The notes under the pieces were generated by a model. The model saw nothing but the letters and a program-made list of their open reading frames with translations. It had not been told where the DNA came from and did no database searches. The position numbers were made by a program, and so were the translations under genes. 64,000 nucleotides of DNA from Octopus sinensis (lineage: Eukaryota), in NCBI RefSeq assembly GCF_006345805.1, contig NC_043001.1, positions 9,176,001 to 9,240,000 of the forward strand, given 5' to 3'. Shown here in pieces: positions 1 through 64,000 of the stretch. The stretch's first letter is position 1; each line of letters begins with the position of its first letter.

Positions 1-1880
1 GTGCAGACTTTTGGAGATGTGTATTATTTTGATGTGGTCTGGTGGTGTTGTGTATGGGTGGTTGTTTGTTTTTATGTCATCTTCTGTTATGTTTGTTTTT
101 GATTGGATGTATTCCATCAATTTGTGTTTTTGGTGTCTATGGCTGTGAGCATGTTTGCTGTATATGTTTTTGTGGTGTTGGTGTGGCTGTTGTTTGCGTT
201 GGGTTTTGAAATGTCTTCGGGAGATGTATTTCCCCCTGCTTTGTTCGTGTTTGCATTTGGTTTGGTTGTGTTTTCTGCTCTTTATTTTCCTTCTTTTTGT
301 AGCTATTTGCCATTCCTCACTGGTTTCGTCTTCCGACGAAATTCTGAGGAATCAGAAGGGGGTAGGGGTATGTTGTGGGCTTCTATGTATGTCTGTGTAA
401 GTGGTTGTGTTGTTGTTTTCGTTGTTGTTGGTTGTTGAGTGTTTGTGTGTGTTGAGTGCGGTATAAGGGATGGGGGATCAGTTTGTGTGTTGTTTCTTTG
501 TTTTTCTGTTCCTTTGGGTTTTGCTGTTGATGGTAGTGTTGGTATTTTTCCAGGTGTCGAGTGGTTTTTGGTTGATGACGGATTAGCTTGGTGTGCTTCT
601 CTTGTCGTCTTCTGTGTTGATGGTGGTGTGGGTAGTAGAGCTTTTTTTCCGGAGTGCTTTGGTTGTGGTAGTGGTTGTTGTTGTTGCTCTTGGTGTGCAG
701 TGGTTGGGCACGTCTTTTTCAAGTGTGTTTCGCTTCCACACAAATAGCAGCGTGGTCGCCTGCCCTCTACCACTATATAGAGTTTGTAGCCTCCTGGCAG
801 TTCTATAGCGGTGGTATCTTCTCTCTTGCTGCTTCATCCAATTGAAGCAGGAATTCGATTGATTTGCCCACATAGTCTTTCTCTCCTAGAACCGCGATTT
901 CCAGGATGTTTGTCTCTGACATTGTCTCTGACATTTCAAAGCAGATGGCAGAGACCACCCATTGTGTTTCGACATCAAATGGTATGTTTTTTTTTGGACT
1001 TTCGTGACCCTTTTGTTTAAATAGACTGGTATCATTACCAAGTCGTCCGAATGTAGCTCCAATGTGGAAAAACGTTTTGCTAAACTTTCGTTGAGGAAAC
1101 GTACTTGGACTGTACCAAATTTGTTTCCCCAACTGATATATTCCTTGGAGTCCCATACAGGACGAAGGCATTTATCGATTTTTTCCTGCGGTGCATTTTC
1201 TGTTCTTCTTGTTTTTTTGTTTATTACTTTATAAATTATTGTTTTTTTTGCGTGTTTTCCACGATGTGTTGTGGAATATGAAGGTGCAATTTGTCTCCTT
1301 CTTTGGAGAAGAGTGCCTTTGTGCGGTTTATCTCTTGTGTGGTGAATGTTACAATTGTTCTTTTTTGTTTTGTTACGTCCGCAAAATTCGTTTTGAATTT
1401 GGCAGTAGAAGTGTTAATTGTGGCAGTGTTAATTGAAGTCATGGTAGTGGTGTTGGTGTTGGCGGTATTAGCAGCAGAAGGCTTGGATGTAGCATTTGAC
1501 GTCGTAGTAGTGGTGTTGGTGTTGGCGGTGTTGTCTTTGGTAGGCGGCTTTGTGCCAATTTCGTTGTTGTTGTTGTTGGTGGTGATGGTGGTGGTGCTGG
1601 CATTCATGTTTTCGTTTGTATTCATTTTTGAAATCCCTTTCTCTGTCCCTTTATCATCAACAAGTGGTGTGGGGAGTGAGGGGAAATCTAAGTTAATGTC
1701 TTTGGTCGCGGCGATGGTGAATGCGACGTTAGATTTGTTGTTGTTGTTGTTGGTGGTGGTGATGGTGGTGACAGCGGTGTTCACGCTGCGATGTTTAGCA
1801 GCTAGTGGTAGCAATAGTGTTTTGCTACCGTTCTGCATGACTGGCGGGCTAGCCACGTGGTTTCTAGTTGCCATTTTCAA
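1..1880 (-). pseudogene. Frameshifted ORF1 (Gag-like RNA-binding protein) of the Tx1-type LINE
   Basis: Track ORFs 1236-1880, 803-1171 and 303-773 join through frameshifts and a stop: T/N-rich N-terminus, RRM-like IPVYLNKRVTKV..KNIP, then ELPGGYKLYIVVEGRRPR-CYLCGSETHLKKTC (CX2CX4HX4C knuckle), then a P/T/Q-rich tail. Confidence 0.8.
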
Positions 1881-2094
1881 AATGAAAAATGGCTAAAAAA
1901 CCCACGAAAGTTTTGAAAGTTTTTTTTGTAATTTCGCCCATACAGGGGCGGAATTCTACGTGAATAATTCTCAGGTTTTTTAGTGAATGAATTTGCACAA
2001 CGATTAAAACAAAATATTTGACAACAAGGAGTTTTAAACATGTAAAAGTGGCCAACTTACTTGGAGCCGATATGACTAGCGTCCGTCCATTGTG
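1..2094 (-). mobile_element. 5' part (5' UTR + ORF1) of a Tx1/L1-type non-LTR retrotransposon, running off the window start
   Basis: ORF1 relic below, plus ~210 bp 5' UTR ending exactly at the (GATA)n array (minus-strand junction ctatc|acaatggacgg). Confidence 0.8.
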
Positions 2095-2618
2095 ATAGAT
2101 AGATAGATTGATAGATAGATAGATAAGTAGATAGATAGATAGATAGATAGATAGATAGATAGATAGATAGATAGATAGATAGATAGATAGATAGATTGAT
2201 AGGTAGGTAGGTAGGTAGGTAGGTAGGTAGGTAGGTAGGTAGGTATGTAGGTAGATACATACATACATATATACATTGATTGATGATTGATTGATTGATT
2301 GATTGATAGGTAGATAGATAGATAGATAGATAGATAGATAGATAGATAGATAGATATATTGATAGATAGATAGATAGATAGATAGATAGGTAGATAGTTA
2401 GTTAGTTAGTTAGTTACTTAGTTAGGTATGTAGCTATGTAGGTTGGTAGGTAGGTTGGTAGGTAGACAGATAGATAGGTAGATAGACAGATATATTGATA
2501 GATATATATGTAGATAGATAGATAGATAGATGATACAAAGGTAGATAGATAGATAGATACATAGATAGATAGATAGATAGATAGATAGATAGATAGATAG
2601 ATAGATAGATAGATAGAT
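2095..2618. repeat. Compound (GATA)n/(GGTA)n/(GATT)n/(GTTA)n microsatellite
   Basis: Tetranucleotide runs read directly. Confidence 0.97.
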
Positions 2619-3148
2619 ATGTTTCTTTATTAGCCACACAGGGCTGCACACAGATAGAACAAATTACAAGGTAGATCTTTTCTTTTGAAGGTTTAAAAAA
2701 TAAAAAAAATAAAAAATAAAAAATAAAATAAAAATAAAATAAAAAAAGGTGGGTGTCGATCAAAAGGGATCGTAAAAGGAGAGAAAGAGGCCAAAAATAG
2801 GGGGGGTTAAAAAAAAGGGGGAGAGGAAAAAAATTGATCAATAGGGATCGTTATCACAGAAATGACAATATGAAGTGTAAAGGGGAGGACAGGTGAGGTT
2901 TACCCGTGGAAAGAAAAGCCTACGGAAAAGACCACGGTAACCTCGGTCAATGAAGTCACATGTTATATTTCTTTTTTTTTTTTTTTTTGCAAATAAGCAA
3001 CTCTCTGTATTAATTTTTACGGTTCATAGAATCATAGTCAAGGTGGCTTCGTCATTCATACGTGCCATCCTTGCTACATTCACCCATCTTTTTTTAAAAC
3101 ATTCACTAGACAAAACTTGCCTCTCTACTCTCACTTTTTTCTTCAAGT
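2619..3148 (-). mobile_element. 5'-truncated Tx1-type LINE 3' end (ORF2 C-terminus + 3' UTR) embedded in (GATA)n
   Basis: Minus 3148-3024 reads LKKKVRVERQVLSSECFKKRWVNVARMARMNDEATLTMIL*, like Tx1 ORF2 ends (ER...F..RW). The UTR ends ggctaataaagaaacat-(atct)n; GATA repeats on both flanks. Confidence 0.7.
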
Positions 3149-3539
3149 GATAGATAGATAGATAGATAGATAGATAGATAGCATTTTATCTATGTTTGTC
3201 TTTATTTATATTTATTTTACTGCCAAGGTTTATATTACCTCGTAGGTCATATAAAGAGAAAATTTTGGTATATATCTTATCAAATACTGATATCAGTTGT
3301 TTGTTGTTTCTGATAATGTGGAGGGTGCGCTTAAACTGATACGTACAGATAGATATCGCACAAGATACACACAAGATACACACATAAACACTTTCACCTA
3401 GATATACACATATAGGAACACACATACACACACAACACACACATTGATACAGCTATTTTCTGAATGTTAACTAAGAAAGGTGTTCTATTTGATAAAACGT
3501 TAAATAGACAATTTCACATACACAAATAAATCTAGCTAT

Positions 3540-62546: not shown

Positions 62547-62763
62547 TTGTTGTTGTTGTTGTTGTTGTTGTTAAGCAACAAGACGGGTAAGGGTGATTAG
62601 GTGATTGTCTAGGGCTTAGGGATGGGAGACCCCAGACCTTGGAAAAAAAAAACTTTGATCGTCTTGTTGTAGTCGAGGACTCTTCGTTGATGCCCGACAC
62701 CACTGGGAGGTGGCCCTCGAAGTCGCTGGAGATGGAGATCTCCAGGTCCAAATTCTTGAACGG
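62547..62763 (-). mobile_element. 217-bp retroposed insertion with (CAA)n tail and 15-bp TSD
   Basis: ccctgaaattgattg at 62532-62546 and 62764-62778; (TTG)n on plus = (CAA)n 3' tail on minus. Confidence 0.8.
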
Positions 62764-62830
62764 CCCTGAAATTGATTGGTCAATCGTAGTAAATTGTCAG
62801 TTTCCAGGCCCTTTTTATTCACTCTGTCGT

Positions 62831-63215
62831 GGAGGCGCAATTGCCCAGTGGTTAGAGCAGCGGAACCGAGGTCGTAGAATCGCGGTTTCGAGTACCAGAC
62901 CGGGCGTTGTGAGGGTTTATTGCGCGAAAACACCTAAAGCTCTACGAGTTTCTGGCAGGGGGTGGTCGTGAACCCTGCTGTACTCTTTCACCACAACTTT
63001 TTTCTTACCCTTTCTTCCTGTTTCTGTTGTACCTGTATTTCAAAAAGGGGCCAGCACTGTCACACTCTGTGTTACACTGAATCTCCCCGAGAACTACGTT
63101 AAGCCTACACGTATCTGTGGAGTGCTCTACCACTTGCACGTTAAAATCACGAGCAGGCCGTTGCGTTGATCAGACCAGCTGGAACCCTCGTCGTCGTAAC
63201 CGACGGAGTGCCACC
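62831..63215 (+). mobile_element. SINE-C with tail g (tail g fragment also at 57648-57762 minus)
   Basis: Head as in 17387, then cacttgcacgtta..ggaaccctcgtcgtcgtaaccgacggagtgcc. Confidence 0.85.
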
Positions 63216-64000
63216 CCTTTATTCATCCTGTATTTCATGGCAACCGAATGAAAATCCAAACGATGATACTCTGTACATCCTATCATACACACGCACACAC
63301 ATTTGTGACTCTGTGTGTGTATGTGTGTTTATGTATGAATGTGTGTCTGTGTGTCCAACTGTTAATGCAAACACGTTTTCTTTTTCTCTCTCCGTTTTTC
63401 TCCTCTTTCCATCTGTTTTCCTTCCTCATTCCTTTCTGTAGAAAAGCGGACGCGGAAAATATCAAGGACTCTTCCAATTTAACTGAATGTCAAATTTATG
63501 CACCTTTGTCGTTGTCTCAACTATACCTATCTTTTGTTTTTGTACATAGATATAAACATATATGTTTTGAAACATTGACACATTCATTCCATACATACCT
63601 TCATTACATACATACATACATACATACATACATACATACATACATACATACATACATACATATATACATACATACATACGCACACATACATACATACATA
63701 CTTATTTACATACATCTATGCGTACATTCATGCATACGTACATGCCATACGTAAATAAATACATATGTGTGTGTGTGCGTGTGTCGCACTTAAACGAATA
63801 TATATAATATAATATATAGGTTTGGTTTTTGTGTGTATGAGTTTATTTCTATGTGTGTGTGTGTGTGTAATAACAATAATCCTTGGACGGAATTTATAAG
63901 CATTGAATGTATCGCTAAGCGCGTTTCCAGAAAACACATGCCCCTTAAAATCACACTCCGTATTGATGAGATGATTAAAATGCAATCCGTAGGATCCGTA

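Follow-up and report, generated by a model that had tools for sequence, protein, structure and literature searches.

Retroelement fragments lodged in matching microsatellites point to repeat-targeted insertion by several LINE lineages in Octopus sinensis

Several retroelement fragments in a 64-kb stretch of the Octopus sinensis genome are bounded by the same microsatellite on both sides, which raises the question of whether they were directed to these repeats, made the repeats themselves or fell into them by chance. The stretch analyzed here in full (the window; 64,000 nucleotides, positions 9,176,001 to 9,240,000 of contig NC_043001.1, assembly GCF_006345805.1) is AT-rich eukaryotic DNA, dense in microsatellites and in tRNA-type short interspersed nuclear elements (SINEs). 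An earlier note, drawn from the sequence without database searches, had described identical microsatellites on both flanks, including at 5′ truncation points, and these boundaries were recovered at all of its coordinates to within 1–2 bp. We conclude, with a probability of roughly 0.7, that at least three lineages of elements that lack long terminal repeats (non-LTR elements), represented by dead and mostly 5′-truncated copies, each integrated by target-primed reverse transcription into the microsatellite matching its own 3′-terminal repeat. The lineages would be a Dong/R4-type element carrying a restriction-like endonuclease (RLE) at its C-terminus, inserting into (TAA)n; a long interspersed nuclear element (LINE) with three C-terminal C2H2 fingers, probably of apurinic/apyrimidinic endonuclease (APE) type and RTE-like, inserting into (ATGT)n; and a family known from its 3′ tail alone, inserting into (TATC)n.

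To set a chance expectation, simple sequence repeats (SSRs) were quantified across the window. Perfect runs no shorter than 12 bp make up 7.8% of its length, a lower bound, with AT contributing 1.9%, AAT 1.4%, AGAT 1.0% and ACAT 0.6%; Tandem Repeats Finder returned 117 rows. Because coverage is this high, random hits in arrays are expected, and only a motif and orientation that are consistent within a family count as evidence. Since an insertion into an array automatically carries the repeat on both sides, the null per insertion is the motif coverage and not its square, that is, about 1–2% per motif, halved for orientation to roughly 0.5–1%. With a probability of ~0.005–0.01 per event, a family with 2–4 events reaches ~1e-4 to 1e-8. 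A random-placement simulation gave P values of 0.0001–0.003 per island; the coverage-based null was preferred as more appropriate. Chance is far exceeded in three families, those in (TAA)n, (ATGT)n and (TATC)n, with motif and orientation consistent in each: every copy carries its family's motif on the sense strand, in the window and, for the first two families, in a 26-kb O. vulgaris comparison locus (L002, chromosome OX597815.1), which has two repeat families in common with the window at ~89% identity. Arrays of all three motifs that hold no element are also present, e.g., at 42113–42326, 43511–43994 and 63590–63765.

The (TAA)n repeat houses a nest of Dong/R4-type fragments, laid out as follows (separating arrays are given on the plus strand):

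18268–18461, plus strand: SINE1b copy, whose (ATT)9 tail at 18435–18461 bounds the (TAA)n nest on the left
18462–18674, minus strand: unclassified 213-bp insert between two (AAT)n arrays; its orientation is taken from the repeat strand only
18755–19300, minus strand: degenerate 5′-truncated fragment of a second Dong-like family, which keeps KPD...ID...K
19298–19322: (ATT)n array
19323–20759, minus strand: 5′-truncated Dong/R4-type LINE copy of 1437 bp with reverse transcriptase (RT) thumb, CX2CX8HX4C motif and RLE domain
20760–20830: (ATT)n array
20831–21309, minus strand: second copy of the 19323–20759 family, 87% identical, with a different truncation point and (AAT)n on both sides
21310–21335: (ATT)n array, here (TTA)8.7

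Between 18462 and 21309, 3–4 inserts follow one another head to tail in a single orientation. The 1437-bp copy ends in ...CAAACATAG(AAT)n and has (AAT)23 at its truncation point. Its endonuclease is a PD..D..K domain that keeps the invariant I-D and K residues and in which RPD has mutated to RPY, which marks the copy as dead; the two copies of this family diverge by 13%. The fragment at 18755–19300 is more divergent than that family, carries a (GAT)7(AAT)19 tail and likewise shows (AAT)n at its truncation point. No second copy of the 18462–18674 insert was found. These two inserts and the SINE1b tail at the left edge of the nest are additions to the earlier note, whose recognition of an R4/Dong-type element in (TAA)n is borne out by the order of RT, CCHC motif and RLE, by the repeat on both sides and by replication in other species.

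A search with the 19323–20759 fragment returned 692 homologues, the best of them 56% identical, from shrimp, corals, a sea anemone, a starfish, a hydrozoan and a killifish. For a 54%-identical relative, the matches in PDB were R2 proteins only, extending from RT through endonuclease (E=1.7e-29), and a PDB sequence search with the window's own fragment gave no match. The insertion pattern recurs at other loci: L002 holds a further Dong-like fragment between (ATA)n and (TAA)n, a eukaryote contig in ENA contains at least three tandem Dong-like copies in (AAT)n, and (TAA)n stands at both ends of a truncated relative in the shrimp Penaeus indicus and of an apparently full-length relative, with an upstream open reading frame (ORF), in the coral Oculina patagonica. 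By its predicted architecture and by its target, the octopus (TAA)n family is of Dong/R4 type. Insertion of Dong-type elements into (TAA)n is known biology, and their sequence-specific restriction-like endonuclease is the established agent.

Some neighboring features touch on this family. An old, divergent RT fragment of an RLE-type LINE at 39559–40524 (minus strand) has a microsatellite on neither side and is a caveat to the (TAA)n link; it may have lost its arrays through decay, or it may be part of a lineage without target specificity, such as HERO. The (ATT)n arrays at 18435–18461, 21310–21350 and 24169–24310 run on from SINE1b tails or precede SINE heads (AAGGCGG...). Since the (TAA)n nest itself starts at a SINE1b tail, the tail of one element may supply the target of another. 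At 14935–15060, a tRNA-like sequence of ~75 nt is followed by an (AAT)n array, and the two together may represent a very short SINE whose tail is of TAA type; ARAGORN made no call there and found no tRNA genes in the window.

The second family is represented in the window by one insert and its two flanking arrays (arrays on the plus strand):

59547–59666: (ATAC)30 array
59667–60074, minus strand: 5′-truncated 3′ end of a LINE, with the last ~115 codons including three C2H2 fingers, a 50-nt 3′ untranslated region (UTR) and a (TGTA)n tail
60075–60177: (ACAT)27 array

Read on the sense strand of the element, (ATGT)n lies on both sides. An impure 29-nt block, CATACATATACATACATATATGCATGCAT, is identical in the two arrays (59574–59602 and 60116–60144) and is absent from the rest of the window and from L002, and a pure (ACAT)15 run separates the 3′ end of the element from the left block at 59574. 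The shared block indicates that an old array predates the insertion and is not purely a self-made tail; the arrangement as a whole suggests a split or duplicated old array with a freshly templated tail. A single database protein, an O. vulgaris entry, resembles this fragment. A second copy, 89% identical, was located at 5848–6296 of L002, again between two (ATGT)n arrays, a 5′ one of 137 bp and a 3′ one of 56 bp. No homology was detected between the two loci outside the arrays, and a segmental duplication is ruled out by these unrelated outer flanks. The (TATG)n-flanked LINE described earlier is therefore matched at a second place, with (ATGT)n flanks at 2/2 independent loci.

The affiliation of this element was approached through its relatives. 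An exhaustive profile-free search retrieved short C-terminal LINE fragments that share the finger region, including an upstream ...DR..WR...KR..RKG... motif, and a distant relative (P0163) in which RVT_1 is followed by the same finger region. The nearest solved structure to the P0163 RT is L1 ORF2p, ahead of R2, and since the RT of the relatives is L1-like, the C2H2-finger LINE is taken to belong to the APE group; it is probably APE-type and unrelated to the Dong-like family. On the conceptual proteins of the window, Pfam gave only weak zf-RVT and C2H2 matches. The label "RTE-like" is plausible but provisional; it fits the short UTR (50 nt from stop codon to (TGTA)n) and the SSR tail. Three C2H2 fingers are atypical for RTE, and to our knowledge C-terminal C2H2 fingers have not been described as an RTE feature.

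The third family consists of two non-coding 3′ fragments near the left end of the window, one of which shares its array with the 5′ end of another LINE:

1–2093, minus strand: 5′ part of a LINE with a ~215-nt 5′ UTR and a frameshifted ORF1 bearing a CX2CX4HX4C knuckle
2094–2619: old compound (GATA)n array of 132 units with 87% matches and GGTA/GATT/GTTA blocks
2620–3148, minus strand: 529-bp 5′-truncated 3′ fragment ending in ...GTGTGGCTAATAAAGAAACA(TATC)n, with (TATC)8 at the truncation point (3149–3181)
7277–7395: (ATAG)30 array on the plus strand, to the left of the next fragment
7396–7554, minus strand: second 5′-truncated copy of 159 bp, with (TATC)21 on its 3′ side (7311–7395) and (TATC)3.5 on its 5′ side (7555–7568)

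The terminal 83 bp of the two fragments are colinear and 92% identical, both end in ...AAAGAAACA(TATC)n, and their truncation points are distinct. Their nearest relative is the abundant SINE1, and the homology of this 3′ end to SINE1 fixes their orientation. (TATC)n therefore stands on both sides in the same orientation in 2/2 copies, and the 5′ end of a third element, the one at 1–2093, abuts the same kind of array: the 2094–2619 array separates it from the 3′ end of 2620–3148. That shared array is the only tie between the 1–2093 element and the 3′ fragments. The ORF1 knuckle of the former, CYLCGSETHLKKTC, gave a weak Pfam zf-CCHC match (E=0.32), and a homologue search with this ORF1 gave no matches; a zinc knuckle in ORF1 is common to many LINE clades. 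The "Tx1" label applied earlier to the (TATC)n elements can be no more than tentative, as the ORF2 and 3′ end of the 1–2093 element fall beyond the window and the 3′ fragments are non-coding. What stands of that claim is the repeat on both flanks and the single orientation, beyond chance. Metagenome scans with the 3′ ends of the (TATC)n and Dong-like families returned no octopus DNA, and two ORFs of the window that were looked up in order to extend the sequence to the left had no database record.

The SINEs and other LINEs of the window show how elements without a repeat preference are distributed. The cases relevant here are the following:

25955–25990: (TA)18 array
25991–26111, minus strand: 121-bp 3′ fragment of the tRNA-type SINE2, 92% identical to 6049–6165
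26112–26161: (AT)25 array
46255–46486, minus strand: full-length SINE1 between (CTAT)16 and (CTAT)15.5, the sole SSR-located copy of 10

SINE1 is present in 10 full copies, 9 of them in ordinary DNA with target duplications of ~15 bp. The remaining copy, absent from the earlier note, lies in (ATAG)n and ends in ...AAAGAAATAG, the array carrying on its terminal ATAG; with 1/10 copies in that repeat, SINE1 was rejected as an (ATAG)n-specific element. SINE1b and SINE2 lie mostly outside SSRs, and over the whole window SINE copies inside SSRs number 4 of ~33, near random expectation. A CR1-like LINE fragment, comprising RT and C-terminal region (10279–11631 and 12647–12952), has no SSR flanks and serves as a generalist control; on its upstream side lies a 71-bp tandem repeat of 6.4 copies, and a mariner-like transposase remnant is found near it.

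The same comparison disposes of the (TA)n case. The earlier note had listed a "tail-e element" at 25991–26111 among the homing elements, and its (TA)n flanks are indeed there. The insert is a single SINE2 fragment sitting inside the (TA)n tract that a SINE3 copy (25820–25990) carries internally, that is, one event in the commonest SSR, compatible with chance, and the only other copy of that SINE2 (5930–6170) lies outside (TA)n; a (TA)n-homing family was accordingly rejected. The broader proposal that unrelated elements each occupy their own repeat survives for a minimum of two mutually unrelated LINE groups, with the (TATC)n family as a third case, and finds no support from (TA)n.

Further repeats were recorded in passing. 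SINE3 (~430 bp, at least 7 copies, at 61031–61480, 34626–35011, 27721–28111, 22261–22622 and elsewhere) has an internal (TA)n(TG)n tract and thereby seeds many TA and TG microsatellites; 2/4 of its full copies have (TA)n at both ends. At 50336–51030 and 48433–48685, 3′ parts of SINE1 are repeated head to tail in units of ~184 and ~127 bp with one common internal start and the end AAAGAAATA, which looks like satellite-style amplification rather than separate insertions. Foldback or MITE-like elements occur at 6901–7277, 61595–61830 and 25542–25746, with inverted arms of 69–112 nt that are 90–94% complementary, and the first two adjoin (AT)n arrays. A 1.7-kb purine-rich 18-mer minisatellite of ~97 units with strong GC and AT skew spans 29789–31460, and a 454-bp (TGG)151 array spans 35431–35884.

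How could targeted integration produce inserts of this form? We propose that an endonuclease would nick one strand within an array, whereupon the repeat at the 3′ end of the element RNA would pair with the nicked strand and prime cDNA synthesis. Priming by pairing would fix the orientation relative to the repeat strand and add a pure, templated tail. Synthesis would frequently abort, and the 5′ end could then be joined within the same array through a microhomology of 2–4 nt, leaving array on both sides. Head-to-tail nests would build up where an array is hit more than once, and the tails of other elements may seed some of the arrays that are hit. Directly supported are the repeat on both flanks, the fixed orientation, the independent truncation points, the recurrence of the pattern at further loci and in further species, and, for one insert, an old, impure array on either side. 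For the (ATGT)n and (TATC)n families, specificity may lie in the endonuclease, in tail–target pairing or in both. A role for 3′ microsatellite-like repeats in insertion-site choice or priming has been proposed for RTE elements (PMC6007223).

Several observations weigh against targeted integration. With an SSR content of at least 7.8%, some chance hits in arrays are to be expected; the (ATGT)n and (TATC)n families are represented by few copies (2–3 each); all copies of the three families are dead; and no empty-site allele was seen. The starts of the two C2H2-LINE copies are separated by only 24 bp, an odd outcome if 5′ truncation is random. On their 5′ side the (TATC)n copies have short arrays, of 14 and 33 bp; since the shorter is the size of a target duplication, the minimal target may be a few repeat units. 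The last ~55 nt are common to the (TATC)n family and SINE1, yet SINE1 inserts almost anywhere. In the one case where SINE1 does fall in an SSR, the duplex repeat is the same but the orientation is reversed, an argument against (TATC)n specificity being encoded strictly by an endonuclease. The combined (TATC)n and SINE1 pattern fits priming by tail–target pairing better than strict endonuclease specificity, and the common 3′ end suggests that the family and SINE1 may form a LINE–SINE partnership.

The high SSR coverage is also the starting point for an explanation by chance alone, in which several of roughly 100 random insertions per 64 kb would fall in arrays. The share of SINEs located in SSRs is close to that expectation, and the (TA)n and SINE1-in-(ATAG)n cases are single events in families otherwise not bound to SSRs, as random placement would have it. 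The three LINE families behave differently: all their copies lie in one motif and one orientation, the pattern is seen again at independent loci and in other species, families with 2–4 events reach the ~1e-4 to 1e-8 calculated above, and the generalist controls of the same window lie mostly outside SSRs. We regard chance as a quite improbable source of the pattern. A rather less improbable account, though still an unlikely one, is that the arrays were made from the 3′ repeats of the elements themselves, which RT slippage extended, and that the 5′ repeat was left as the tail of a previous copy, in some cases one consisting of tail only, or arose when the RT jumped to another RNA; on this view the elements would be drawn to each other's tails and not to free-standing microsatellites. 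The copies are arranged head to tail, the (TAA)n nest begins at the (ATT)n tail of SINE1b, the pure (ACAT)15 adjoins the 3′ end of 59667–60074, and the (TATC)n arrays on the 3′ side far exceed those on the 5′ side (526 vs 33 bp and 84 vs 14 bp), all of which agrees with self-made tails, as does the generation of SSRs at the 3′ ends of RTE elements (PMC2887409; PMC9115989). Such tails do not account for the identical 29-nt impure block in both arrays around 59667–60074, for the L002 copy, whose 5′ array is longer than its 3′ array, for the apparently full-length coral copy with (TAA)n upstream of its 5′ end, or for the many long arrays of the same motif that stand without any element.

Spread at the DNA level, in which ectopic recombination or gene conversion, with the arrays serving as homology, would carry a once-trapped fragment from one array to others that share its motif, without targeted retrotransposition, would explain both the near-identical 5′ ends of the two C2H2-LINE copies and the variant block common to the two flanking arrays in the window. 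Elsewhere it meets with difficulty, in that the Dong-like and (TATC)n copies clearly differ in truncation point, every insert extends to a defined 3′ end and passes there into the repeat in a single orientation, and the Dong-like pattern is present in four phyla. Recombinational spread is conceivable for the C2H2 LINE family only, and as an explanation of the whole we consider it highly improbable. Targeted integration by target-primed reverse transcription thus remains the explanation we favor.

A wider version of this reading, in which undescribed APE-type lineages of octopus (one RTE-like, whose three C-terminal C2H2 fingers read (ATGT)n, and one for (TATC)n with a tail shared with the major octopus SINE) partition the main SSR classes with Dong while tails seed new targets, is speculative, and we consider it unlikely. 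The genome-wide division of repeats into niches, with insertion and repeat expansion reinforcing each other, that the earlier note had put forward would be an extrapolation from the 64-kb window and 26 kb of O. vulgaris DNA; the sole hint of reinforcement is that SINE tails and SINE-internal repeats provide some of the arrays later hit by other elements. If the division were true, the main SSR classes of an unusually SSR-rich genome would be shared out among LINE lineages, with tails and SINE-borne repeats seeding the arrays. Target-specific LINEs are natural models for safe-harbor insertion, R2 being the genome-engineering example, and several lineages with different repeats in one genome would allow endonuclease-encoded specificity to be compared with specificity encoded in tail pairing. 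They would also allow a comparison of how transposons and microsatellites shape each other in cephalopods, whose repeat content is an active topic of study. In practical terms, multicopy LINE ends will often lie next to octopus microsatellite markers of the TAA, ACAT and GATA classes, and nests of this kind will be joined wrongly in repeat annotation.

That some LINEs are specific for microsatellites is well documented (PMC3812793; PMC4640811). In Anopheles gambiae, Waldo inserts in ACAY, Mino in AC and Dong in TAA; in pufferfish, Kibi inserts in TC and Koshi in TTC; the NeSL-related Togen inserts in (TG)n, and some HERO families are also reported to be microsatellite-specific (PMC3812793; PMC4640811). 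Among octopus LINEs, Dong-R4, RTE, L1-Tx1, CR1, Hero and R2 have been reported with no mention of SSR targeting; the Dong-R4 lineage is annotated in both O. vulgaris and O. bimaculoides (PMC13282606; PMC9115989) and is the most abundant recently active LINE annotated in O. vulgaris (PMC13282606). The octopus (TAA)n family resembles DongBg of Biomphalaria glabrata and DongAg of An. gambiae in the order of RT, CCHC motif and restriction-like endonuclease, and in its insertion into (TAA)n, the sense strand reading TAA, with truncated copies in tandem (target in PMC3812793). It shows no essential difference from them; its best protein relatives are only 56% identical, and its placement in R4 as against HERO is putative.

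With Waldo and Mino (R1 clade) and Kibi and Koshi (Tx1 clade), the octopus families share the use of one microsatellite per family, present on both flanks in a fixed orientation, and the co-occurrence of several such families within one genome, as with Waldo, Mino and Dong or Kibi and Koshi. The ACAY target of Waldo belongs to the same duplex repeat class as the octopus (ATGT)n. R1-clade elements appear to differ from the octopus (ATGT)n element, with its three C-terminal C2H2 fingers and 50-nt 3′ UTR. The targets given in the cited literature do not include (TATC)n/(GATA)n (PMC3812793; PMC4640811), and any clade assigned to the octopus (ATGT)n and (TATC)n families is provisional. The RTE elements of Lepidoptera and of O. 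vulgaris (Petrosino et al. 2022) have a comparably short 3′ UTR ending in a microsatellite (PMC2887409; PMC9115989); the reports on them describe SSRs made at the 3′ end and insertion sites marked by T-stretches, and mention no insertion into a cognate array that also lies 5′ of the element, as in the present case.

Together, (TAA)n targeting in octopus is not described in PMC13282606 or PMC9115989, and the pairings of a C2H2-finger LINE with (ATGT)n and of a family with (TATC)n, absent from the cited literature, may be new. As the sharing of microsatellites among several LINE lineages within one genome is already known, the octopus elements represent a known type of system in a new host.

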